64,000 bases of DNA from the NCBI GenBank assembly GCA_020891255.1, contig BQFW01000001.1, positions 2,728,001 through 2,792,000 on the forward strand, in the 5' to 3' direction. The notes beneath the pieces were generated by a model that was not told the origin of the DNA, did not search any database, and saw only the letters and a list, made by a program, of their open reading frames with translations. Of the stretch, positions 10,032 to 25,979 are shown in pieces (the first letter of the stretch is position 1; every line of letters begins with the position of its first letter). Both the position numbers and the translations under genes were made by a program. The DNA comes from Entomortierella parvispora E1425. Its lineage: Eukaryota; Fungi; Mortierellomycota.

Positions 10032-12315
10032 CTACAGCCGCTTCGACATTTTGATGATATAGCTCTCTGTTGCCAAAGCTGTCGTAATAAATTGCACATA
10101 GTCATCCCTCTGATAGGGCACGTATTCGATATCGTATGTGGTCAAGATCGTCGCCAAAATCAGCCGCATCTCCATCATGGCAAAGTTCTTTCCAACGCAG
10201 TTCCTGGTACCAGCTGAAAACGGGTAAAATGTGAAGTCCTGGATCAAAGGGAAGGCTGATTCATCTGGGATCCAGCGCTCAGGAATGAATTCAGTAGGTC
10301 GAGGGAAGTACTCCTTGTTCCAATGCAGGGATGGGATATTAGCGAGGACAACTGCAGGAAAGAAGGATGTTGTTCATGAGATTAATGAATCGAAATATAC
10401 CCGTTAATCATTTTGACAAAAGTGGACGCTTACTTGTTCCTTTGGGAATGTTGTATCCACCCATCACTGTGTCTTCTGTGACCTCTCGAGGAAGACCTAA
10501 TATGTCATACCAAGGTATAGAGTGCCCGTGTTAGATTCAACTCCTTGAGGCACAAAAGGCAACAAAAAATAACAAGGTAGCCACCAAGTGCATTTACCTG
10601 TCGCAGCAACAGGTCGCAGACGCATCGACTCGTTGATGCAAGCCGTCAAATAGGGTAGATTTCGGACTTGGTCGTAGGTCGGCAGGGCGCCGATCGGGTT
10701 ATTGGCCGTTGCCTGGTCCAATTCTCTCACCAAGCGGTTGAGTGTGCGTGGATTCTTGACCAGATACATCAACGTGTTGGTCATGGCAGTGGATGAAGTC
10801 TCGGATCCAGCGATCCTATAATTTTTCATAATTGTCATTGATATCCATGCTATGCTTCATACACGTTCTGAATAAAGAGAGAGGAAAATGGTCCTTACAA
10901 AAAGACGATTGCCTCCGTTTCAACTGCGCGGTCTGTGAGTTTTCCTGCAATCATATCCTCGTATTCGTTTCCTGTCTCTCCATTCCCGTTTGCGCGTTCG
11001 TTGGCTTGTGCATCTATCAAAAACTGTAAAAGATCCGCCCTCTTGCCTTGTTCTCCTGCCTCCCTTCGGACCTTAACCCTCTCAGCGCCGAAGCGGAGGA
11101 ATGAATAGTCCAATGGGAGGAACCATCGCATCCAGGGGTTGAAGGTTTGCTGCATGGATCTCTTCAAGGTTTTGGCCATTTGTCGAGGGATTGGATGGGA
11201 GTCATCTCGAACCATTTGAAAGGACTGACCAAAAGCCGTCTCTCCAATAATGTCAAGTGAAAGTCTGTTCATAAAAGAGCAAACGTTAATTTGACCCTTG
11301 GGAAGGATCTTGGTGCCCTTTTTGACGGATCGAGGGTCTTCTAGGATCTCGTCGATTTTTCGGATGAGGACGTGGATACAATCGTGCATGACGGGCTCTA
11401 GAGAGCGTAGATATTGCAGTCCAAACGCAGGTGCCACTAGTCGTCTCTATTTGTTTTCAAAGATGAACCATACAGGGTCAGTCCTTAGTCGGTCCTGTGG
11501 AGCTGTGGGGTAGTTGATATCTTTTGAATTCCGTACCCTGTTCTTGTGGAAATCCTTGTTCCTGGATGAGAACAGATTGTGCTGATTGTAAAGTTCGAGT
11601 CCCTCGTGAATCTCGCTCTTTGGGAAGTCGGATGTAACCAAGATCTCACGGACTGCATCTTTATCCGCGATCGAAACAATGTTGGGCGCTAAAAGTCAAG
11701 AGGGCAAGATCAGCAAATGAATCCAGTTTGAACAATCATTCTGTCTGCTGGTGGATCTAGTGCTGCCAGTGATGGCCTTTTGGCAAAGGTCAATAGAACT
11801 TGCCTACTCGAACAATGTTTCCGTATCTCTTGTGTGTTTGAGGTAAGAAGTAGTGACTATGAGGATCAAACGATCAACTGTTGATTAGATGCTGTGGCCG
11901 TTGATCCGTCTGAAACAGGAGCCGCGTCATCCATGCCCACCTGCGTCCTGACAATACGCCAAGGGCCGTGAAAAGGTATGTCGACGAAAGGATACTGGAA
12001 GGGATATGACTCAACGGGTGAAAGTAACGGTTGGTAATAGCCTGCTCCGAACGGAATAGAGGGTTGAGCATAGAGTCCCTGTTAGTCTTGAACTGGGTCC
12101 CGAAGAAGATGTATCAAAGAATATAGCTGGTGAGTCCTCCTGTATAGCTGCATGTCGACGTGTACCTTTCTGAGTGCGTTCAGGACAGCAAAGGTGATGA
12201 GGAGCCGAGCCAGGATGCGTGGCTTCTTTAGATCCTGCACTGTCTTTGGGTATTTGTCGAGAGATGCCGAGAGTATCCCGGGCAGGTCCGCGAGTAACTT
12301 TGAAACGGCGGCCAT
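10032..12315 (-). CDS. Cytochrome P450 (E-class group I type), multi-exon
   Basis: YFHPLSHIP after the N-terminal anchor, I-helix FLIAGSETSST, K-helix ESMRLRP, FIPERW and heme motif FSAGTRNCVG. Exons join across GT-AG introns. Confidence 0.92.
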
Positions 12316-12360
12316 GGTCTTTGTCCTCTGTCGCCCGTACTCCTGTCTGTGGTGTGTTCC

Positions 12361-12391
<31 letters not shown>

Positions 12392-12428
12392 AGGAAGGGA
12401 AATTAAGGATGGATGCAGCGGAAGAGAC

Positions 12429-12464
12429 AGAAAGAGAAAGAGAAAGAGAAAGAGAAAGAGAAAG
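12429..12464. repeat. (AGAAAG)n hexanucleotide repeat, preceded by a poly-A run at 12361-12387
   Basis: Directly visible upstream of the P450 start. Confidence 0.9.
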
Positions 12465-13355
12465 AAAAAGGGAGGACCGATCGGACCGAGTGGACGTCCA
12501 GAGAACAAACAAAAGTGTGGGGGGCAGAGCTAAAGTGGCGTCCAGCCGAGTGTGTGATGGGAGAGGGAGGTGTGCCATGAGGTGTGCCATCAGTGAGCAC
12601 TCCTTTGTGTCTCTCTCGGGAGAGAGACTCTTTTTTTTTTTTTATTTTTTTTTTTATTTGCCCCCCTTCTTGTCGCGAGGTCGGTTGCACAGACAGAGAG
12701 CCAGTTGCTACTTGCTCGTTCTCGCTCTCGGCTGATTTTGATCATGCTCGCAGTCAGTCCGTCTGTCTGTCGTGGATCCGAAACGTCCGTTCCTGCAGGA
12801 GATGTTCCCTTCACGTCCCGTAGACTACAGTACGCGTTGAATCGGCTGCAGGATGGGGGCAGCGACTCTTTTTTTCATCTCCGGAAAGAGACGCACTCCT
12901 TCGGGTCAGATCCGGCCGAGTGATGTCACCCACACCCTCATTCGCTCCATCTTTCCACTTGCCACCCCCTGTTTTGGTCAAACAAGTTTAGATGTTGTGT
13001 TGTTCCTTGTTCGTTGTTCGTCAAGATAGGATAACGGTAGCACGTTGTTGCGATCTGCACCTTGTGGCTTTACACTGCCCTTTATTTGTCGTGACACAAC
13101 ACAATGGCGATGCAGGAAAACAAGATCGTTGCCTGGGTATTCCAGCAAGGGCCTGGATTGCCGACTTCTACGGCTAAACCGACAGCTGGATCGACCTTTG
13201 GAAAAGAGGTTGGGCGAAGTCCAATTGATGAAAGATATTGCAACAGCTTTTCCCCTTTTCTTTGTCTCCCTTCTTTATTCCTTTTTTTCTCTCTTCTACA
13301 CACCTTCTTTTCCCCCTGTCCGTACTGTCTTTCACATACCATCTTATACCTGCCA

Positions 13356-15056
13356 ATGACACTCGTCGATAATCTCAACATACTCCGAGTGACCTACCAA
13401 GGCGAGGTCAACTGCTACCTCGTACATAAAACCCTGGAGCACTGCAGCTGCTCGACCTGCAAAGGTTGGATCTCCCGCGAGAAAGCCGAGCATTTTCTCG
13501 ATGACACGCGAACCTTTGGCTACATCACCTTGAAAAAGGATGATCGAGAAAGATCATTCTACCTCTGTCCAACGCAAACCTTCCACATGAGCTTGGTGTC
13601 ACAATTGGCTGTCAAACACAGCACCCCCATGACCATGGTTATTCGTAGTGGTGACCAAAGGTCCACATGGAAAGACCAGCTCGCAGTCGGCTCTAAAATC
13701 TACGGGTCAGTCTCGATCAAGGTCCATTCTCATGTCGTTCAAAACTCGCCCATGGTTTTGAAACATAACCGTACCCGATCTCCGAGCAGGCTCAAGTTGA
13801 CATTTCGAGGGCCACAAAAGAGCTGCTTGATCTTTTCAACGACAAGCAAGTGCCGATGCGACACTTGCAAAGCCTGGATACGCTGCGAGACCTTGCCCTT
13901 TCTCGACACAAGAAAAAACAAGTATGGCCTTGTTACGTTCGAGCAGGTCCCGCTGGAGATCAGAACGTTTGACTTTTGTTGGAACCACATCATGAAAGTA
14001 ACGGCGGTTCAGTGGTCAAGTCGGCATCTGTTTCGAGAGCAACACCTCCAAGTCACCCTCAAGGGCTGGAAACAAGGCGCCATCTACCGGGATATTGGAA
14101 AGATTGGCACTGGCACTTTTGAGATTAGGATGGAGGTCTACAGTGTCAGTGACATGCTGCCCCACTACAGTGAGGTGCCGACTACCCAAACTACGTCCCA
14201 GCAACCTAAGCATCCGATCTTTGGTCCTACTGAGAAAGGACAAGGTGATCTTGCGCCCTGCAAACAGGGTGAAACGAAGCTATCAGAGAGCTTTGCAGCA
14301 TCATCATCTGGGGGTGAGCGACTCCATCGTCGTACTGAGGTTTACGATGACGAGCTCCCTGAGTACCACGAGATCGATGATCTGTCTAGCAACATATCGG
14401 GCCCAAGCTCGGTAGCGACAATACATTCAGTAGACCCTCATTCCCCAACACGATCTTTGGATTATATCCCAGAGTACTCATGGCCGCCTGCCTCTGCGAG
14501 CAGCTCATCCCTGCCTCCACGCCAGCTCGGGATCAAGTATGTTGGCAGTAGAAAGGGGCTTTTAGTCTTTTATACAAAGTCTCACTGCAATTGCGTCGTC
14601 TGCAACGATTGGATGAGTCTACAACTTACCCCTTTCAAGAAGGGCCAAGGAGCCTACGGCGTCATACCTTTCGAAAGACGATCAGAAGAGAGGGTGGTTG
14701 ATATCTGCTTCAATCACACCATGGCAATGGGCGTGGTTCCTTGGTCAGACCGTTATAGTGCAGAGAAGGTGGATATGAGTTTGGAGGTCAGTGGCCAGCA
14801 CCAGAACAAGTCATGGCGGGATGTGGTCGGGGATGATGTGGATTCTTGCAAAATCACCTTGAAGGTTTGTGCGATCACCCTCGAAAAAAAACGAAGGTCG
14901 ACGACGATGGCGCGGACTGTCATGAACGGGGCTTGGTCAACCGAGTCAGAGCTTATGTTCCGAGGGAGTGATAGTTGCTATCGAGCTTTTCAAGCCAAGG
15001 TCGACTGTGGATGCACCATGTGCGAATTTTGGAAAGCACAGCGAAAAGATCTTTAA
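13356..15056 (+). CDS. Unrecognised protein with three complete and one truncated ~120-aa CxCxxCxxW repeat; probable start at 13356 (ORF open from 13104)
   Basis: Long intronless ORF. Motifs HCSCSTCKGW, KCRCDTCKAW, HCNCVVCNDW and DCGCTMCEFW sit in alignable contexts. The 13104-13355 extension is largely CT-rich UTR-like sequence. Confidence 0.75.
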   Translation: MTLVDNLNILRVTYQGEVNCYLVHKTLEHCSCSTCKGWISREKAEHFLDDTRTFGYITLKKDDRERSFYLCPTQTFHMSLVSQLAVKHSTPMTMVIRSGDQRSTWKDQLAVGSKIYGSVSIKVHSHVVQNSPMVLKHNRTRSPSRLKLTFRGPQKSCLIFSTTSKCRCDTCKAWIRCETLPFLDTRKNKYGLVTFEQVPLEIRTFDFCWNHIMKVTAVQWSSRHLFREQHLQVTLKGWKQGAIYRDIGKIGTGTFEIRMEVYSVSDMLPHYSEVPTTQTTSQQPKHPIFGPTEKGQGDLAPCKQGETKLSESFAASSSGGERLHRRTEVYDDELPEYHEIDDLSSNISGPSSVATIHSVDPHSPTRSLDYIPEYSWPPASASSSSLPPRQLGIKYVGSRKGLLVFYTKSHCNCVVCNDWMSLQLTPFKKGQGAYGVIPFERRSEERVVDICFNHTMAMGVVPWSDRYSAEKVDMSLEVSGQHQNKSWRDVVGDDVDSCKITLKVCAITLEKKRRSTTMARTVMNGAWSTESELMFRGSDSCYRAFQAKVDCGCTMCEFWKAQRKDL

Positions 15057-15487
15057 AAATAGAATGACGCGACACTTGAACACGAGAAGACGCGAGTTGT
15101 TTTCCTTTTTTTTTGTGTGTGTCTTGCAACTGGTTGACGCCCACAGCTTTGCCATTCTTCTGGTAGCTTCTACCCCTTGTTACCTTTGCTTTCTATTTCA
15201 GGCACAGCACAGCCGAACAAAATGGTTTCTGTCCCCCCAAATGACTTTCTGGCCGTGCGCTGTACTTTTAGAGTCGACTGAGCAAGAAGCAAACCCTTGC
15301 CCCCCTGGGCCGACTTTGCCAGTAACAAACGGCTCAAATATATATATATGTGTCCATCCTTTTGTCCTCTCTCTTCCCTCCCTCCATTTCAACAACTTTT
15401 TTCTTCGCCAATTGGTAGGTGTGTTGCAGATCCCCTTTTTTTTATTGTTACAATCGCTGCTGACTTGTTCTCACAAGGACATTCTTA

Positions 15488-17110
15488 ATGAAGCATTCCT
15501 CCATCAGCAGACAGCCTTTGTCCATTAAAGTCACAATGAACAATTGCAACACCCTGAGATTCAGCCGCTATAGTGGCGAACGCGCCTTGCCTTACTACGT
15601 GTGCTATCGCACATATCGCGACTGTGGATGCGGCATCTGCAATTGGTGGATCCAAGGCGAGAAACGAGCTTCCACAAATAACGACCGTTACAATTTCGGC
15701 GTATTGGACTCAACAGACAACGAATTCAGTGAGACGATCGCCATCTGTCCTAATCAGACCATAAAGCTCAAAATTTTCCCTGGACTCGCCTCCGAAGTCA
15801 TCACTATCAAAGACGGCGATCTGAATTTGGAAGTCGAGGGGAATCGCGCGGAAAAACTGCAAGATATGCATATGCTCAAGGGTCGGCGCTACGACTTTTC
15901 TGTTGAAGTTTACTCTCATGTCGTCCGGAGGTCTTCCGTGGAACATAAGCCAGCTATCGAGCAATCGTCTGCATCGGTAAAGTTTACCCCTGAAATTACC
16001 GATACGTGCCGTTTAGCTTGGTATTCACGATCCGACTGTAAATGCGACAAGTACATCAAGCTCCGGAACAGACAGAAGAGCAAACTTTTCGGTGAGAACG
16101 ATGATCGAAACGTTTATTTAATTAGTCTCGTCCCAGGGAGCGTTAAAAAACCTGTTGAGATTTGCAATCATATGGAAGTTCGAATGCGTCTGGTCAAGAA
16201 GTCGCAAGCTAGCAGTATCCGCTTCAGCGACCTTTGCATGGTTGTCAGGGGCTGGAGACATGGGGAAGTTTTACAAGACAAGGCGATGGAGGGCTGTACG
16301 GTCAAGATCGAGGTCCTGAAAGTAGAAACGACGCCTCCAATTGAAAACAGCACCACAGGCACCACAGACACCCCTCAAGTGTTAGTTCCTCACACGTCGT
16401 CCAATCAAGAAATGGTCGAGACCCCCCATCAACAGCACCACGATATCGCGCAGGTAGCCTCTGAAAGCGACGACGCGTACAAAGTGGAAGTCCAAGGAGA
16501 TCCACGAGATTCAAATCAAGAAATGGCCGAGGCCCCCCATCAACAGCACCAAGATATCGCGCAGGTAGCCTCTGAAAGCGACGACGCGTACAAAGTGGAA
16601 GTCCAAGGAGATCCACGAGATTCAAATCAAGAAATGGTCGAGGCCCCCCATCAACAGCACCACGACGATATCGCGCAGGTAGCCTCTGAAAGCGACGACG
16701 CGTACAAAGTGGAAGTCCAAGGAGATCCACGAGATTCAAATCAAGAAAGAGTCGTGGTCCCCAGCCAACTCACCCAAATCATTGCGGAGGAAGCCTCTGA
16801 AAGCCAGGACGACTTCAGACTGGAGGAGGTGATACGAAGAGATCCGCAAGATTTGAATCGGTCTGTCGAGACAGCCGCGCCTCTGGCATCATCCAGATCC
16901 ACTATGGCCGTCATCTCAGGAGCACCTGTTAGGACCCCACAAGAAAATATTGAACTCCAGCGATTCGACGCAAACGGTGGCGTGCCCAGGTCGCCAGAGT
17001 ACCAGGACTCGCAATCGGACGAATCAACCTCTTCGGAAACCAGCCCTCCAGTCATGGATCTCATCGCAGCGCCATCAAACACTGTCGAGCTTCCTACCAC
17101 CACTTGGTAA
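15488..17110 (+). CDS. Paralogue of the preceding gene: two CxC(xxC) repeats plus an acidic C-terminal tandem repeat
   Basis: 540-aa ORF with DCGCGICNWW and SDCKCDKY in the same domain context. VEVYSHVV matches IKVHSHVV of the upstream ORF. Start is 15488 or 15536. Confidence 0.75.
   Translation: MKHSSISRQPLSIKVTMNNCNTLRFSRYSGERALPYYVCYRTYRDCGCGICNWWIQGEKRASTNNDRYNFGVLDSTDNEFSETIAICPNQTIKLKIFPGLASEVITIKDGDLNLEVEGNRAEKLQDMHMLKGRRYDFSVEVYSHVVRRSSVEHKPAIEQSSASVKFTPEITDTCRLAWYSRSDCKCDKYIKLRNRQKSKLFGENDDRNVYLISLVPGSVKKPVEICNHMEVRMRLVKKSQASSIRFSDLCMVVRGWRHGEVLQDKAMEGCTVKIEVLKVETTPPIENSTTGTTDTPQVLVPHTSSNQEMVETPHQQHHDIAQVASESDDAYKVEVQGDPRDSNQEMAEAPHQQHQDIAQVASESDDAYKVEVQGDPRDSNQEMVEAPHQQHHDDIAQVASESDDAYKVEVQGDPRDSNQERVVVPSQLTQIIAEEASESQDDFRLEEVIRRDPQDLNRSVETAAPLASSRSTMAVISGAPVRTPQENIELQRFDANGGVPRSPEYQDSQSDESTSSETSPPVMDLIAAPSNTVELPTTTW
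16403..16860 (+). repeat. Coding tandem repeat: 111, 111 and 114 bp near-identical units plus one degenerate unit
   Basis: Unit starts aatcaagaa at 16403, 16514, 16625 and 16739. Encodes NQEMVETPHQQHHDIAQVASESDDAYKVEVQGDPRDS. Confidence 0.95.
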
Positions 17111-17471: not shown

Positions 17472-19151
17472 TTAAACAACATATACGCCCTCGGGGCCAA
17501 AGACGCATGCCCCACCGTCCCTGCCTTCCAGAATCTTTCGACGGGCGTTATTGGTAGCAAGACAAAGAGAATTGAGTTTTCCTGTGATGGTCTCCAAATG
17601 TTCCCAATGTTCCTTCATCCACAAAGCATCCTCCTCCGTTATGATCTGGTTCGTGCCAGTCAAGGCCAAAATTCTCAGATTGCGCCACCCTTTTAGTTTG
17701 TCAAGGCCATTCTTCAGTCCAAGCTGCAGGTCGCGAACTTCCCCATGGAGGGCTTCTCGACGCTTACGAATAGGATCAAGGGACACTCTTGCCTCGAGGT
17801 CAAAGTGTTGGATGCGTCTAAGGGTCCCCAGACGCTCAATTATCCCCCTTGGGTTTGCTTCATCGTCCAGCACTTCCAAGGCAGTCGTGCAGGCCAAGGT
17901 CGAATCAATGGCCTCTTCTGTTAATGTCAAAGTCGTTGCGGTTGTTTCTGTGGCTGTCGATGGCGATGATGATGGCTGCTTGGTAGAACTTTCCCAGATA
18001 CTCACATGTAGCTTGATCAGACGCAAACAAACCCATGGCCGAGGATCCTCGATCACGTCCTTCTCGTCGAGATACTTGGCCGAAAAGGACTCGAGAAGAG
18101 GCAATCTGCAGAGTATATCTTGCACCATATGACTCTCGACATTGGTCAAAGAATACAAATCCAGCGATTGTAATGTGGACCCAAAGTGACTTATGATCAC
18201 ATTCAAGGATCGATTACCGGTCCAAAAAGGCGCCCCCCGAAAGTTCTTGAGACGCACCATTCCCGATGAAATTTTTGATTGCAGATACGGCAAGAGAAGG
18301 TCATACTTCTCTTTCGGAGAGGACCCAGAGTTTAAGAAGATACTGTGCAACTTCGGGCAATGCTTCGCTTGTGCTGCGAAAAAGCCTCCCAGGTCATCCT
18401 GAGAAGCGGTTTGACGCGGGGTCCACGAAAGGGACTCAAGATCGGGGCACCATTTCAATAAAGCCAGTTGATCTAAGCAGCAAGACATGTTGAACATTAG
18501 CCTGAGTTCCTTGATGGTCGAGGGCCATAGTCCTTCCTCGAAGGCGTGAGTGTGGTGGCCCTTGCGGCACTGCTCAGGGTCATCTTTCTCTCCGAATGCC
18601 ACAAACTGCAGCTTCAAAAAGGTCAAGCGCGACCAAGTCGGCCAGCACCACTTTCGCCAGCTCTGTTGACTGATAGTGACTCTGGCCAAAGACAAGAACG
18701 TCAATGACGGACAACCTGCGATGATCTCCCATAGACAGTCTGACTCTTGAACGGACAGTGTCTTCCCTGAAGCCCTGTCGAGCTGTAACCTGGTGAGCGA
18801 CTGGGAATGTAGACGAACAAAGTCGATATGGGAGGCAACATCCGCTTGACGGAGACAAAAGTCCGAAAGGACTGGAAATATCAAGGTCCGGAAGGAGGAG
18901 AGATCCAAGTCTGTGCAATAGATGGATTTCACGAGCTTAGCGTATTGTGTCAAGGTCGTGAAGGCCATTGGTTTTGACTTCCGGTAAGACGAATTGGTTG
19001 TGAATTCGAGGTTGCGCCAGAGAAAGGGAAGGAGGTCGTTGTGCCAATCGCGGCTGACGCGCATACAGACAGCGAGCACTGGACGCGTCAAGAACTGCGC
19101 TACGTGAATTCTAATCTCGGGCAGGTCAAGTGCGGACATTGCCACAGTCAT
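17472..19151 (-). CDS. F-box/RNI-like LRR protein, subfamily A copy 1
   Basis: Intronless 559-aa ORF with ALDLPEIRIHVAQFLTRPVLAVCMRVSRDW (F-box-like), LRR-like repeats, and C-terminal LGLKNGLDKLKGWRNLRIL...WMKEHW. Confidence 0.85.
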   Translation of the reverse strand: MTVAMSALDLPEIRIHVAQFLTRPVLAVCMRVSRDWHNDLLPFLWRNLEFTTNSSYRKSKPMAFTTLTQYAKLVKSIYCTDLDLSSFRTLIFPVLSDFCLRQADVASHIDFVRLHSQSLTRLQLDRASGKTLSVQESDCLWEIIAGCPSLTFLSLARVTISQQSWRKWCWPTWSRLTFLKLQFVAFGEKDDPEQCRKGHHTHAFEEGLWPSTIKELRLMFNMSCCLDQLALLKWCPDLESLSWTPRQTASQDDLGGFFAAQAKHCPKLHSIFLNSGSSPKEKYDLLLPYLQSKISSGMVRLKNFRGAPFWTGNRSLNVIISHFGSTLQSLDLYSLTNVESHMVQDILCRLPLLESFSAKYLDEKDVIEDPRPWVCLRLIKLHVSIWESSTKQPSSSPSTATETTATTLTLTEEAIDSTLACTTALEVLDDEANPRGIIERLGTLRRIQHFDLEARVSLDPIRKRREALHGEVRDLQLGLKNGLDKLKGWRNLRILALTGTNQIITEEDALWMKEHWEHLETITGKLNSLCLATNNARRKILEGRDGGACVFGPEGVYVV

Positions 19152-19399
19152 TTATCCCTGGAGGTGAGTAGATGGGGGAATGAACGGAGAATGAATGGAG
19201 AAATGGAGGAATGAATCCAAGAAAGTGATGAGAAATGAATCATGCATGTCCCCTCTAGTGAATAGGGCACACTGCCACATTTAGCCCTCTTTTTGCGCCC
19301 ACCATCTCTGCCACGGGCATCTCAACTGAGTGCCAGCCCCTCGAGGCCTGCAGACTGGTCCATTTTTCATAAAAAGCAATGATGGAGGCTGATATCTAT

Positions 19400-21061
19400 T
19401 TATACGAGAGAGACGCCAGGTGGACCAGGACTGTAGATGCCAATGTCAATGTCTTTGAGAATCTCTCGACAGGCATTGTCGGCAACATTCTGGACAGAAT
19501 TGAGCTTTCCTTTGAGGGTCTCCAATCTTGACCAGTTCTTCTTCATCCACCAAGCATCCTCCTCTGTCATCATCTGGTTCGTACCAGTCAAGTTCAACGT
19601 TCTCAGATTGTGCCACCCTTTTAGTTTGTCAAGGCCGTTCTTCAGTCCAAACTGCAGATCACGGTGCGTGGTTTGTCGACTGGAGCGTAAAGAATCGAGG
19701 AATATTGTCTCTCCAAGATCGAAATGTTGGATCCGACTCAGGGCTCCCAGGCGTTCAAACATATGCCAGTGACCCGCCTCATATGTAGTAACATCTAACA
19801 CGGTTGTGTAGGCAGCTTCGGGATGGGTTCCATCATGTGTTGTGGCCAAAGTCACGGCGTCCTTTGTCGACGGGCGGGATGGCTGCTCCTTGGCAGGGTT
19901 CATCCATATACCAATATGAAATTTGATCAGACGCAGACAAACCCACGATCGAGGATCCCTTACCACATCATTTTCATGGATATGTCTGGCCGAGAAGGAT
20001 TCGAGAAGTGGCAGACTACACAGTAAATCTTGAACCATAGGGCTTCTGACATGGGTGGCAGAAAAGAGCTCCAACGATTGAAGAGTGGACGCGAGGTGAC
20101 TCAAGAGAAATCTCAAAGTTCCATCACCAGCCCAGTTGGGCGCTGCCTTCAATGACCTCAGAGGTGCAAGACCCGCCTCCGTTCTCGAAAACAAGAATGG
20201 AAAGAGAAGATCACTTTCCTGGGTGGAGGAGTACCCATATTCTACCTTGATGTCGTCCAGTTTCGGGCAATGACTCGCCTGTGCTGCGAAAAAGTCCCCT
20301 AGATTATCTTGAGAGGAACTTTGACGAGGGAACCAGATCAGTGACTCGAGTTCAGGGCACCATTTCAGTAGGGCCAGTTGATCCAAACAGCAAGAGTTGT
20401 CCAAGAGCAGCTCAAGATGCCGGATCTTCGTTGGCCAGAGTCCCTTTTCAAAGGCGGGAGAGTTGTGGCACTGATCAGGGTCACTCGCGTCCCCAATTTC
20501 GACAAAGTGGAGTCGCAACAGGGTCAAGCGGGACCAGGTGGGCCAACACCACTTTCGCCAACTCTGTTGCGTGACCTGAAGTCTGGCCACAGACAAGGAC
20601 CTCAGGAAGGAGCAGGAGGCAATGATCTCCCAAAGAGCATCCGACTCTTGGTCTGTCAATGCGTTTCCTGCAAATTTTTGGTGGAGTTGAAGTCGAACCA
20701 GTGTTTGAGAATGTCGATGGATAAAATCAAAGTAGGTGGCCACATTCACTTGATCCAAAGAAAGGTCCGTCACGGTCGGAAACAAGAGGGTCTGGAAGGG
20801 AGAGTTCGATTCTAAGCAATTGATGCATTTCACAAACGGTGCGTGCTGTGCCAAAGTCGTGAGGGACATTGCTGGACCTGTCGTCTGAAAAATGGAGCTG
20901 GCTCTGACATCGAGTTCGCGCCAGAGAAAGGGAAGGAGGGCGTGCTTCCAGTCGCGACAGACGCGCACACAGACAACCAGCGTGCGACGTGTCAGGAACT
21001 GGGCGATGTGAAGTTTTATCTCGAGCATGTTGAGCGCATGCATTTTTGCTTGCATTGCCAT
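19400..21061 (-). CDS. F-box/RNI-like LRR protein, subfamily A copy 2
   Basis: ALNMLEIKLHIAQFLTRRTLVVCVRVCRDWKHALLPFLWREL, colinear with copies 1 and 3. Start placed at MAMQAK (21061) because the upstream extension is (CCAT)n-derived. Confidence 0.85.
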   Translation of the reverse strand: MAMQAKMHALNMLEIKLHIAQFLTRRTLVVCVRVCRDWKHALLPFLWRELDVRASSIFQTTGPAMSLTTLAQHAPFVKCINCLESNSPFQTLLFPTVTDLSLDQVNVATYFDFIHRHSQTLVRLQLHQKFAGNALTDQESDALWEIIASCSFLRSLSVARLQVTQQSWRKWCWPTWSRLTLLRLHFVEIGDASDPDQCHNSPAFEKGLWPTKIRHLELLLDNSCCLDQLALLKWCPELESLIWFPRQSSSQDNLGDFFAAQASHCPKLDDIKVEYGYSSTQESDLLFPFLFSRTEAGLAPLRSLKAAPNWAGDGTLRFLLSHLASTLQSLELFSATHVRSPMVQDLLCSLPLLESFSARHIHENDVVRDPRSWVCLRLIKFHIGIWMNPAKEQPSRPSTKDAVTLATTHDGTHPEAAYTTVLDVTTYEAGHWHMFERLGALSRIQHFDLGETIFLDSLRSSRQTTHRDLQFGLKNGLDKLKGWHNLRTLNLTGTNQMMTEEDAWWMKKNWSRLETLKGKLNSVQNVADNACREILKDIDIGIYSPGPPGVSLV

Positions 21062-21213
21062 TGTTCTCGATGATGGACTCTGATGGGACGGGATGGATGG
21101 ATGGATGGATGGAGGAATGGATGGAAGAAAACAACGCTCGACCGCGCCTCTGCCACGTTTCACCGGTTTTTTTTTGAAAATATCTGTCTCTGGTGCCGCA
21201 TCAAATCATCCAT

Positions 21214-21400
21214 CCAGGGAGGGTGGGCCCTACAGTCACTATACCACCTCCTCTGTCTGCCTCTTCAGGGACTTTGTGGCGGGGCATCTTGCCTGGTCAC
21301 CATGGTGACCCTCGATAGGACGCAGCTTGGGACAATTGGCCATTCCCGTTGCACTTCTTTTTAGTCGCACTCAACGGTTCATCCGCTCAAGAAAACTCGA
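21214..21400 (-). pseudogene. Decayed copy of the 3' coding end of the 23318-25979 F-box gene
   Basis: Shares ordered exact blocks with 23396-23577 (cctcctctgtct, cagggacttt, ccctcgata, caattggcca, tcatccgctcaa). Its minus-strand translation has a stop and frameshifts. Confidence 0.8.
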
Positions 21401-21503
21401 TCATACTGACCCTGATTGACAGGATGAAGTTCAACTCCAAAGTTCACCAAGCATCCAGGGATATTTTACAAAGAAAAGCAGAACAATGGAGAATGGGTTT
21501 ATT

Positions 21504-23198
21504 TTATACGAGAATTACGCCAGGGGGGTCAGGATTGCGAATGAAAGCGCCAACGTCTTTCAAGATCGCTCGACAGGCGTTGTCGGTGTCACTCTGGACA
21601 GAATTGAGACTTCCATAGATGGTCTCCAATCTCGGCCAGTTCACCTTCATCCATAAAGCATCCTCCTCCGTCAACTTTTGGTCCGTGTCGACCAAGCCCA
21701 AAACTCTCAGATCGCGCCACCCTTTTAATCTGTCGAGACCGTTTTTCAGTCCTATGTGTAGTTTGCAAGCTTTGTGATGCTTTCGACTGATAGGTACTAT
21801 ACCAAAGGCCTGTGGCGGCATGAGGTCAAAGTGTTGGATGCGGATTAGTGCCCCTAAACGCTCAAACAACTCTCGGCCTGCTGATTCATCGGCAAACACA
21901 TCCGTAGTGGATGTGAAGGCTGCCGACAGATGAGTGGCCTCATCTACGGTAGCCAAGGTCGAAACCGTCATTTGTGTTTCTGTCAGTGACGATGGTGATA
22001 GCTGCTGAGTAGGACCACCCATGCAGATGGTGACATGGAACTTGACCAGACGCGGACACGCCCAAGGCCGAGGATCCCCTACGATGTCTTCTTCAGAGAG
22101 ATATCTGGCCGAAAAAGATTCGATAACAGGAAGGCTACAAAGAAAATCTTGGACCATGGAACTCTCGACTCTGGGAACACAACGCAAATCCAGGGATTGT
22201 AGGGTAGACGCGTGATGACTCAGGAGTATCTTTGATGATCTATCACCGATCCATGGGTGTCCCGCCTGGAGTTTCTTTAAGGGCGACGCTCCTCGTGCTG
22301 TTTTCTCTTGCAGAAACGGAAAGAGAGGGTCGATATTAGAGGACGGGATGTGCCCGATGTGCCCAATGACAATGTTGACACTGTTCAGTTTAGGGCAATG
22401 CCTCGCTTGAGCGACAAGTAACTCGTCTACATTATGAGAGGTTCTCCGACGAGGGAACCAGACCAATGACTCGAGTTCAGGGCATCTTTTCAGCAAGGCC
22501 AGCTGATCCAAACAGCAGGTATTGTCCAAAAACAACTCGAGATGTCTGATCGTCGTAGGCAAGAATTCCTTTTCGAAAGCAGGACAGTTGCGGCACTGAT
22601 CAGGGTTGCTCCCGTTCCCAATGTTGACTAGGTGGAGTCTTAATGTTGTCAATTGAGACCAAACTGGCCAGCACCACTTTTGCCAACTCTTTTGCGTGAT
22701 CTGGACTTTGGCCACAGACAGGGACTTCAAGGACGAACAGGAGGCAACGATCTCCCATAGAGCATCCCACTCTTGGTCTGTCCATGTACTCCCCACTCTG
22801 TTGAATTGTAGACGAACGAGTGTTTGAGAATGTCGATGGATAAAGTCAAACCAGGTGACTAGATTTACTTGATGCAAAAAAAGGTCCGTTATGGCCGGAA
22901 ATGTCAGGGCCTGGAAAGAGAAGTTTGGTTCCGAACATCTGATGGATTTCACAAACTCTGCATGCTGTGTCAGGGTTGCGAGGGTTATTACTGGATTTTT
23001 CACATGACAAAAGGAGTTGAATTGGACGTTGAGTTCGCGCCAGAGAAAGGGAAGGAGGGCGTGCTTCCAGTCGCGACAGACGCGCACACAGACAACCAGC
23101 GTGGGACGTGTCAGGAACTGTGCGATGTGAAGTTTTATCTCGGGCATGTCGAGTGCGCGCAGTGTTGCAGCCATTGATCCCTGATGAAAGGATGGCAT
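21504..23198 (-). CDS. F-box/RNI-like LRR protein, subfamily A copy 3
   Basis: ALDMPEIKLHIAQFLTRPTLVVCVRVCRDWKHALLPFLWREL, colinear with copies 1 and 2. Start is 23198 or 23174. Confidence 0.85.
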   Translation of the reverse strand: MPSFHQGSMAATLRALDMPEIKLHIAQFLTRPTLVVCVRVCRDWKHALLPFLWRELNVQFNSFCHVKNPVITLATLTQHAEFVKSIRCSEPNFSFQALTFPAITDLFLHQVNLVTWFDFIHRHSQTLVRLQFNRVGSTWTDQEWDALWEIVASCSSLKSLSVAKVQITQKSWQKWCWPVWSQLTTLRLHLVNIGNGSNPDQCRNCPAFEKEFLPTTIRHLELFLDNTCCLDQLALLKRCPELESLVWFPRRRTSHNVDELLVAQARHCPKLNSVNIVIGHIGHIPSSNIDPLFPFLQEKTARGASPLKKLQAGHPWIGDRSSKILLSHHASTLQSLDLRCVPRVESSMVQDFLCSLPVIESFSARYLSEEDIVGDPRPWACPRLVKFHVTICMGGPTQQLSPSSLTETQMTVSTLATVDEATHLSAAFTSTTDVFADESAGRELFERLGALIRIQHFDLMPPQAFGIVPISRKHHKACKLHIGLKNGLDRLKGWRDLRVLGLVDTDQKLTEEDALWMKVNWPRLETIYGSLNSVQSDTDNACRAILKDVGAFIRNPDPPGVILV

Positions 23199-23317
23199 CT
23201 GATGAATGGAAAGATGGATGAAGTGGATGAGGGAAGGATGATAAAAAAAAGACAATGAGATGGGCGGATGGACAACTTTCGCCTTTTGGGCGCTTTTTAT
23301 TTTCTTGCTCTTTCAAC

Positions 23318-25979
23318 CTAATACCATATCATGTGGTAGTCCTTGCTTGTCCACGATCCTTGGCGCATGTTGTCTGGCGACCAGCCCAACTCGATCCAAG
23401 GGCAGTGCTCCTGCAGCCACTGCACAGCCTCCTCTGTCTCTCCAGGGACTTTACATCGGGCGTCTCCCATGTGCGCCAGGCCCTCGATACGACGTAGCTT
23501 GGGCCAATTGGCCACCATCCATTGCACCTCTCTCAATCGCACGCGATGACTCATCCGCTCAATGCCCAGGACTTCGAGATCCTTCAGACCTGCCAGGTGT
23601 TCGAGGCCCGCGTCCAGGGACAGTGATAAACACGAATACTGGTATCCTGTGTCATGGAACATGAGCGGGAGATCATTTGGCAAACCCTCTTCCCAGTAAA
23701 AGTCATTGTCCGAGTACTCGCTGTCGCTGTCGTCGTCGTCTTCTTCGTCGTATTCCTCGGGTCTCTCCTCGTCGCCATCCTCATTCTTTTCGCCTTTACC
23801 ACTGACATCCTCGCTTTCCCGGTTCACCGACCCGTATTCATTGTCGTCATTCGCCTCCCCTGCCTTCACTGGCCAGTCGATGCCCAGATCCCGAAGTCGA
23901 TCCTCCGGGATATCACGATAAAACGAGAGGTCCTTCCACTTGCGATCGTCAATACCCAGGATCAACTTTTTCAACCTTTTCATCTTGCCCAGTCGTCGAC
24001 AAATCTCTCGCTCTACTTGTACGGCCACGTAGGGCTCTTTGTACTCCTCATGGGCCAAGGTGCCGTTCCGAAGACGGCTCAACTGACCTCCATACTGGCT
24101 CCTTGTCAGATCCGGTCTGGGTACATTCTTGATCATGATCTGCAGAACCTCCAAGCTGTCATGGCAAGCCCAGCTGTTCAGATCGACACATTGACGTTCG
24201 CTGTTGTCATAGTTGTTCTCGTTCAAGAAAATCCACCCTCTGTTTCCGGGGTGAACGGCAGCCTTCTCAGTCCAGGTTGACCAGAACCGATCGATTTCAT
24301 GCAATGGCAACAAGAGATCCTGGGCATCCAAGGCCACGTTCAGATACGGATCATCAAACTCCTGTATCGGATCGTTGTTGTCTTCGATCCCGAGTAGACA
24401 TTTCAAGCGAGGCGATGTTCGAAATATCCGCGCCAGATCTCGCGAAGGGAAACCGTCCGAGAGCTTCAAGGTCAAACTCTCGAGGGTCGACACATGCTTT
24501 AGAATGGCAGCGCTGGTCCGTACATAAGAATCCTCAATGCGCGTCAAGGTAAGGTTCCTCCAGCCGGATGGACTTGAAAAAGAAGGATGGACCCATGATT
24601 CTGTCGAGTGGAGGTCATCAGAAGACGATGTCAGGGACAAAAGTTCGGCCAAATCCTCATCGTCCCACACTTTGGACGTGGTAAAGTTGGAGAGCGACTG
24701 TAGAGCAGACCCTGCTCGAGGCCCGGTTCCTTGAGACCGATCGAGTAATTGTGCTAGTTCCTTGACTCCAAACCATTCAGTCGGCTGAACGCCTGTCACA
24801 AAGAGGCATCCCTCGAGATCCATATCCATGGTCAAGGATTCAAGTGTGGGACGACACCGCTGAATCAATCGCTCCAGCTCTTGCAAGAAATAAGCTGGTC
24901 TCACTAGCTGAGTCCCTGCATCATTGACAACAAAAGTCGAGCCAATGGAGCATCCATCCAATCCAGGCCGCGGTAAGGGATAACATCCAGACAGGCCCAA
25001 GGCCTTGAGTGAAAGCGGTAACATCGGTCTTGTTGCATCTTCCTCTTCATCCAGATCCATTTGACGATCGCGTTCGTTGTCATATCTTTCCATCTCAGTC
25101 ATTGCTTCATCAAACGTCAAAGACCGAGCTTCTATCTCCTGGAACTCAAGACCTGAGGTCCCATCCATGATATCGCAGGATGTTCCACTTTTGATCGTCA
25201 TGAACAATTCCTGAAGGACATGTGGAAGGTTTCTTAGAAGCCAGAACAAGGGATTGTTCCGATCATTTTTGATAAGGTCGACCGTTATCTTCAGCGTCTT
25301 CAGCGCATGCCCGAGATCTACATTTTCACGATCAGGGTTAGCGGCAATCCATGTCTTCTCCTATCTATTTTTTTTTTTTTTTTTTTTTACCATGTGCGAT
25401 CAACGAACTCAAGAAGTGCCGTTTGTAGTACCACTCGGATGTAATCGGCCAATTCACGCAGTTGAATATCTCCAGTCCTGGGTTGTTTTTCATCATCAGC
25501 AGCAGGCGTGGCGGCAACGGTTTGAACCAGGCAAGATTATCGCCTCGGCCCCCCTGAGGATAAACCTCTAGTAATACTCTACTCAGCATGGGGGAACTAA
25601 AGTTCAGTTCGACAAGGTGTCTGACGTAAGGCCGTCCAGGTCGTCTTGGAGCGTCTTCTTCTCCTTCCCTTTCCTCTTCTACTTCCTTTCGTCCTCGGTC
25701 CTCTTCTTCTTTCCCCTCTTGCAAGAACGGTTCCAGCGCATCGAAGGACTGGACGCTCAACTTTCGAATAAAGGATCCGTACTTTCGAACACCCTCCCAA
25801 AACGCCTTGTCCTTGAATGCGTGCCTGTACTTGTTCCTGCGAAGTAGAGCCACCTCGTTCCAGAGAACTGGACTCAACAGATTGTTCCATGCTTTACAGG
25901 CTCGGTTCGCGGACAGGAGCGCCTTTCGATCCAAATCAGAAACAATGACCAAAAAGAGCTCGGGCGGCAGGTTCTCCAT
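23318..25979 (-). CDS. F-box/LRR-like protein, subfamily C; exons 25979-25391 and 25317-23318
   Basis: MENLPPELFLVIVSDLDRKALLSANRACKAWNNL (F-box). A 73-nt intron (GTAAAA..GCTAAC..TGTAG) joins the two ORFs in frame. C-terminal LSLSLDAGLEHLAGLKDLEVL...VQWMVANWPKL. Confidence 0.85.

Follow-up and report, generated by a model that had tools for sequence, protein, structure and literature searches.

The subject of this work is a pair of neighbouring genes in the fungus Entomortierella parvispora E1425. They lie in a stretch of 64,000 nucleotides (contig BQFW01000001.1, positions 2,728,001 to 2,792,000 of the forward strand), which is called the window below and is numbered from its first letter. 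The two genes, A and B, are genuine paralogues that code for soluble intracellular proteins. Both are built from copies of a single module of approximately 125 amino acids: six units are present, five of them full and one truncated, and the similarity among them is far above chance. The module represents a real, undescribed domain family whose predicted fold is C2-like. An earlier note, made from the sequence of the window alone, had drawn attention to these units and had recognised no family for them.

Six copies of one module in two adjacent genes

The evidence that the units are a single module comes from several kinds of sequence comparison. A BLASTP alignment of the two proteins covers 292 residues and spans two units (E 1e-16). 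In unit-to-unit tblastn comparisons within the window, A2 matched A3 (E 4e-16), and A1 matched B1 (3e-11), A3 (2e-7), and A2 (6e-7). A profile composed of 28 units, all of them from other species, was run on the six-frame translation of the window. It matched A1 (E 4e-27), A2 (6e-31), A3 (2e-30), B1 (6e-18), and B2 (8e-15), and the truncated A4 was matched at E 2e-5 over profile positions 7–37 only. Nothing further was detected in this translation under E 1. All six units proposed by the earlier note are thus matched by a profile of foreign origin, with E values from 6e-31 to 2e-5. The units can be aligned across their entire length of about 125 residues; a failure to align beyond the CxCxxC core, which the earlier note had named as an outcome that would count against it, was not observed.

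Gene A (13356..15056, + strand) is a single-exon coding sequence of 566 codons plus a stop. Its protein consists of units A1 and A2, a linker, unit A3, and the truncated A4. The open reading frame (ORF) that contains it has no stop from 13104 through 15056 on the + strand. The methionine at 13356, taken as the start, is also present in P0009, a copy of the gene from a metagenomic relative, and the DNA 5' of this methionine within the ORF is low-complexity and pyrimidine-rich. Unit A1 (13356..13751, residues 1–132) carries CSCSTCKGW from 13443, unit A2 (13764..14165, residues 137–270) carries CRCDTCKAW from 13851, and unit A3 (14496..14900, residues 381–515) carries CNCVVCNDW from 14586. The linker between A2 and A3 has about 110 residues and is rich in Ser, Thr, and Pro. 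Unit A4 (14916..15053, residues 521–566) comprises the first two strands and CGCTMCEFW and is ended by the stop at 15054–15056. The idea that A4 continues across an intron was rejected; the rest of the unit is found in no frame of 15057–15487. The C-x-C-x-x-C motifs of gene A accordingly start at residues 30, 166, 411, and 551 (window positions 13443, 13851, 14586, and 15006).

Gene B (15488..17110, + strand; annotated as P0001) is likewise a single-exon coding sequence, with 540 codons plus a stop. It encodes units B1 and B2 and an acidic, repeat-rich tail. Unit B1 (15524..15937, residues 13–150) has CGCGICNWW from 15623, where its C-x-C-x-x-C motif starts at residue 46. Unit B2 (15944..16342, residues 153–285) has a degenerate CKCDKY, so that C-x-C alone is found at residue 184 (16037); the third Cys and the Trp are lost, and the invariant later Cys is retained. 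In the acidic tail, a 111-nt (37-aa) tandem repeat extends over 16403..16811 on the + strand, in 3.7 copies that are 91% alike. Each 37-aa repeat carries Y-K-V-E-V, which is like the final strand of a unit and also resembles a repeated I-K-V-E-V in the tails of relatives of the P0020/P0022 type.

The Cys motifs were found where the earlier note had placed them, including those of the truncated unit near 15005 and of the CxC-only unit near 16035. The C-terminal SHVV that it had described for unit 1 of each gene is seen in both translations. Its description of the pair as intronless also agrees with the two uninterrupted single ORFs and with the deposited gene B model, which has one exon. Signal peptides and membrane segments are absent from both proteins (maximal 19-residue Kyte–Doolittle mean, 0.85).

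Predicted fold and distribution of the family

The module is predicted with high confidence to be an eight-stranded beta-sandwich with one helix, in line with the beta-rich fold anticipated by the earlier note. An AlphaFold2 model of A1, computed from an alignment of the five window units only, reached a mean predicted local distance difference test (pLDDT) score of 79. For A2, with an alignment of 36 units, the pLDDT rose to 92.4 with a predicted template modelling (pTM) score of 0.84, and all five models were above 91. In unit numbering, the strands of the A2 model cover residues 8–15, 20–26, 53–59, 65–71, 76–83, 97–100, 107–114, and 117–127. The helix at 33–40 starts within C-x-C-x-x-C, and a second, short one is found at 84–89.

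The closest known shape is weakly indicated to be the C2 domain of the cPLA2 type. Six structure searches were made with two models. In Foldseek searches of the PDB and of clusters of the AlphaFold database, C2 domains were ranked first, with E values of 3e-3 to 5e-2 and template modelling (TM) scores of 0.35–0.50. A second-look structure search gave C2 domains in 50 of 50 rows, and a shape search of the Atlas returned no stronger match than the C2 ones. It could be supposed, then, that the module is a true but highly diverged Ca2+/phospholipid-binding C2 subfamily, whose cysteines are merely a lineage-specific stabilising feature. The structure searches yield C2 domains and almost nothing else, the size and strand count agree with C2, and the lipid anchors of distant family members (described below) would fit a membrane role. 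However, the module has no detectable sequence similarity to C2 domains (cPLA2 type, type II topology, PF00168 clan), and the scores of the fold matches fall in a grey zone. C2 profiles (PF00168 or related) matched 0 of the 36 units at E <= 1, and the whole proteins were also unmatched. The conserved core of the module is C-x-C-x-x-C-x-x-W plus C-x-x-H, a combination that, to our knowledge, is found in no C2 family. Acidic residues are conserved at E42 (29 of the 36 units), D48, and D110 (28 units), but no conserved Ca2+-binding aspartate cluster is evident. Membership in a true C2 subfamily is, on this evidence, unlikely, though it keeps some plausibility.

The wider family was found by an exhaustive HMMER search with a profile of the five window units against 1.84 billion cluster representatives. 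It returned 39 proteins; 29 of them passed E <= 1e-10, and 8 also passed 1e-30. The weakest long match, P0038 (E 5e-4), has K/R-rich repeats and is probably a false member, which leaves about 38 related clusters. All the named members are labelled "hypothetical protein". The Mortierellomycota contribute Lunasporangiospora selenospora, Gryganskiella cystojenkinii, Dissophora globulifera, Entomortierella parvispora, Linnemannia hyalina, and several Mortierella spp.; the Chytridiomycota contribute Rhizoclosmatium globosum, and the Oomycota Pythium oligandrum and P. insidiosum.

The module matches no described family, and the earlier note had recognised none for it. Pfam has no model that matches either protein, eight further family members, or the 36 aligned units (E <= 1), and a unit profile matched the sequence of no solved structure at E <= 10. 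Full-text searching for CxCxxC brought up unrelated proteins only. Feature searches of the ESM Atlas produced only low scores of 0.46–0.53. Word-index homology searches with residues 1–270 of gene A and with the 36-unit alignment found nothing, whereas the exhaustive profile search did find the family.

Family members are often arranged in tandem gene clusters, and the family usually occurs as clusters of this kind that turn over quickly. In P. oligandrum (L006 1–14400), 14 kb of DNA carries a run of at least eight adjacent genes with about 24 units among them, and the part of the profile that these units match is its N-terminal half. The second half of these array units is different and Cys-rich, and several of the array proteins have terminal CaaX boxes. 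Three Mortierella-type assemblies share one conserved cluster of four single-unit genes (L007 7315–7956 and 10001–10735; the entire loci L008 and L009). At the Gryganskiella locus, an intact three-unit gene adjoins a fragmented copy. A single-unit paralogue, P0015, is located on the contig of the window, about 120 kb upstream of it (L011 8001–8429). It stands alone, and a 1002-aa protein nearby shows a faint F-box-like match. The patchy occurrence of the family in fungi and oomycetes might be the result of gene transfer to a mycoparasite.

Evolution of the gene pair and its surroundings

A syntenic locus was found in a metagenomic relative. Two soil-metagenome assemblies (L001 and L002, mutually 99.97% identical) and a third contig (L003) carry it, with a P450 gene, a gene A copy, a second gene, and an F-box gene in this order. 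The gene copies there are broken (L001 766–3855; L003 3004–3708). In a tree of the units, window and relative pair with high support for A1 (100/98), A3 (100/100), and B2 (99/95), and the first units of A and B form one clade (93/93). The paralogy suggested by the earlier note is borne out by this clade and by the separate orthologues of each gene in the relative; the duplication of A and B is therefore older than the split of the two organisms.

The two genes have evolved differently. Gene B branches are about five times the length of gene A branches. The second gene of the relative retains a third unit, and gene B of the window has lost it. Gene B may be pictured as a copy that is diverging rapidly, has shed its third unit, and has acquired an acidic tandem repeat. 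The gene A comparison with the relative gives a ratio of nonsynonymous to synonymous substitution rates (dN/dS) of 0.35 (Nei–Gojobori, 517 codons, dS 0.82, bootstrap 0.27–0.45), which is 0.33 in the units and 0.40 in the linkers. In single-unit orthologues, values of 0.10 and 0.27 were obtained for the domain. Judged from these substitutions, gene A is under moderate constraint, and the purifying selection whose absence would have spoken against the earlier note was detected. The reading frame of the gene A copy in the relative is interrupted by in-frame stops and changes three times, and that of the second gene changes once; both assemblies show all of these defects. The dN/dS values and the broken copies together indicate that the family is constrained at the protein level, yet the A/B pair turns over quickly. 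The description "fast-evolving lineage-specific" from the earlier note is therefore half right. The long gene B branches and the broken copies in the relative confirm the fast evolution, whereas the occurrence in Mortierellomycota, Rhizoclosmatium, and Pythium contradicts a restriction to one lineage.

The broken copies also raise the question of whether the pair itself is decaying. The ORFs would then be relics of a once-functional cluster, unexpressed or useless, and open only through recent inactivation. The deposited annotation, which was made with AUGUSTUS and RNA sequencing hints from mycelium (PMC8759367), calls gene B (540 aa, one exon) and does not contain gene A. Gene A counts as unannotated because no gene is called between the P450 gene and gene B. 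No RNA run is listed for the region. Sampled words of gene B were found only in DNA runs of the source sample and in 0 of 9 other runs bearing the same species label. For gene A, a 1,251-letter contig of another isolate matches two short parts at about 85–90%, and no contig matches to genes A and B were obtained in two further isolates. Unit A4 is truncated and the motif of unit B2 is partly lost, which would also be expected of relics, as would the stops and frameshifts in the relative. On the other hand, both ORFs (566 and 540 codons) have stayed intact in DNA of 48–50% GC, nearly all cluster Cys are retained, and the annotators did call gene B. The dN/dS of 0.35 is well under 1 even though one partner in the comparison is broken. 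The truncation of A4 is common to the relative, where P0028 ends soon after CEFW, so it is old and tolerated. Decay of the window pair is hence rather improbable.

The surroundings of the pair are as the earlier note had described them, with a P450 gene on one side and an F-box array on the other. The cytochrome P450 gene (10032..12315, - strand) is a called gene with PF00067, and the Pfam match lies on one exon ORF; its coordinates were obtained by adding 9487 to the position in the genome record (L010). Between this gene and gene A, at 12200–12700, there are long low-complexity tracts of homopolymer or dinucleotide type, namely poly-A/T and GA/CT-like runs that translate as poly-K, poly-F, and RE repeats. 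Downstream, three tandem F-box-like paralogues (17472..23255, - strand) match PF12937 and are 48–58% identical in pairwise comparisons. With a fourth, distantly related ORF, the F-box-like array extends over 17472–25249 on the same strand. The deposited models of the first two F-box-like genes are shorter than their ORFs. There is no sign of a functional link between the pair and these neighbours; the C-terminal extension of P0003, a three-unit family member, is unlike the window F-box protein and has no Pfam domain.

The cysteine cluster and a proposed role near membranes

Residue conservation was counted over the 36 aligned units. C72 is present in all 36, and C30, C32, and C35 in 35 of 36 each. 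W38 is found in 29 units, with Phe in 4 more, and H75 in 27, with Gln in 6 more. Glycines are conserved at G16 (32 of 36) and G101 (33 of 36). The signature C-x-C-x-x-C-x-x-W is situated where strand 2 meets the helix, and the invariant Cys, usually followed by His at +3, at the turn between strands 4 and 5. In the A2 model, C72 ends strand 4 and H75 lies in the strand 4-to-5 turn. At least four ligand-type residues (C30, C32, C35, C72, and often H75) are thus conserved in the paired spacing of structural zinc modules. One ligand is lost in each of two units, B2 of the window and A1 of the relative. Structural zinc sites typically show such an arrangement, with a C-x-C-x-x-C whose last pair is at the N-terminus of a helix and a C-x-x-H in the turn of a hairpin.

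This pattern suggests that the conserved Cys cluster probably holds zinc. Three cysteines and the Cys/His pair would bind one structural Zn2+ and staple the helix region to the strand 4–5 hairpin. Zinc sites in the loops of beta-sandwiches are familiar from the p53 core domain (Cys3His), in which ligand-type residues also come from two loop regions of the sandwich. Zinc-knuckle and treble-clef sites have C-x-x-C at a helix N-terminus; in the module, one C-x-x-C pair likewise opens a helix, and a second pair is C-x-x-H. The module is unrelated to these proteins in sequence or fold, and its metal binding is putative. A metallothionein was rejected, since 22 Cys in the 566 residues of protein A and 12 in the 540 of protein B are far from the roughly 15–30% expected and the model is a well-folded beta-sandwich.

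If C32-x-x-C35 were a redox-active dithiol, the module would be a thiol–disulfide sensor or oxidoreductase with no metal site. Its position at a helix N-terminus has the geometry of thioredoxin-type active sites, and one unit gave a sub-threshold Thioredoxin_4 match (E 5e-4). This match occurred in just 1 of the 36 units, however, the predicted fold is a beta-sandwich and not a thioredoxin fold, and C-x-C-x-x-C ... C-x-x-H spacing with four to five conserved residues of ligand type is more zinc-like. A redox function is very improbable. Secreted Cys-rich effectors or lectin-like extracellular proteins with disulfide-bonded Cys are the least credible alternative. Rapid evolution, clustering in tandem, and the beta-sandwich would suit them, and galectins appeared among protein-language-model neighbours at a very low score (0.46), but the missing signal peptide and membrane segment, the low Cys content (22/566), and the CaaX boxes of the Pythium members, which are cytosolic signals, all speak against export. 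The conserved Cys are unlikely to be disulfide-bonded because the proteins are intracellular.

The class of the predicted fold and the lack of any signal for secretion would point to a cytosolic binding module. The additional elements carried by family members suggest where it may act. The C-termini of the Pythium members read CAIS, CVIS, CVIS, and CNVM; a CaaX box of this kind is a signal for C-terminal farnesylation. Single-unit members from Mortierellomycota have in common VYxQCY, a stretch rich in Q, and, at the C-terminus, a tail of the form h-G-h-D-h-G-x-A-F-F. This tail motif occurs nowhere but at the C-terminal ends of family proteins (L007–L009) and is absent from the window. It is a candidate membrane-inserting or amyloid-like element. 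An amyloid-signalling NLR partner was considered and dropped; the tail motif is confined to family C-termini, and L007–L009 contain no NLR domains.

The three-unit proteins have [LP]PxY directly after unit 2, as LPHY in gene A (14157..14168, + strand), PPDY in its relative, PPSY in P0003, and PPAY in P0005. A second PY-like motif in the disordered linker of gene A, LPEY (14355..14366, + strand), corresponds to LPDY in the relative (P0024). Six occurrences in the family compare with about two expected. Gene B has no [LP]PxY outside a unit. The motif is the classical ligand of the WW domains of Nedd4/Rsp5.

Taken together, the modules may provide surfaces for binding in the vicinity of membranes. 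Distant members would be tethered there by C-terminal CaaX farnesylation (Pythium) or by the aromatic tail (single-unit Mortierellomycota members). Gene A has no such anchor and would instead use the pair of conserved [LP]PxY motifs that its linker carries; as WW ligands, these lead to the reading of its product as an adaptor or substrate of an Rsp5/Nedd4-type ligase. The alpha-arrestins, or ART adaptors of Rsp5, likewise consist of tandem beta-sandwich modules followed by [LP]PxY in disordered regions and are cytosolic and expected at membranes. The resemblance is one of architecture only; genes A and B have no Arrestin_N or Arrestin_C Pfam match, and no arrestin appeared among the structural matches. 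The overall picture of a zinc-stapled C2-like module in membrane-proximal adaptor or scaffold proteins has, in our judgement, about an even chance of being correct. The link of gene A to Rsp5 is held with less confidence than this picture.

The family touches no long-standing open question, and its function is inferred only. It nevertheless adds a well-defined and confidently foldable domain family, missing from Pfam and PDB, from the poorly studied Mortierellomycota, chytrids, and Pythium. It also draws attention to an intact 566-codon gene with four recognisable units that is missing from the deposited annotation. A bolder and distinctly speculative reading is that a previously unrecognised, zinc-stapled C2-like domain gave rise to a novel class of proteins that work near membranes in Pythium and early-diverging fungi. 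Some members would be farnesylated, some would have a Q-rich region and an aromatic tail that is possibly amyloid-like or membrane-inserting, and some would have PY motifs. Such proteins would act as fast-evolving ubiquitin-ligase adaptors or as cell-death or conflict effectors, and the family would possibly have been exchanged between fungi and a mycoparasitic oomycete. The combination of a C2-like sandwich, a Cys/His cluster of the metal-binding type, and three devices (CaaX box, aromatic tail, and PY motifs) makes the family a testable case.

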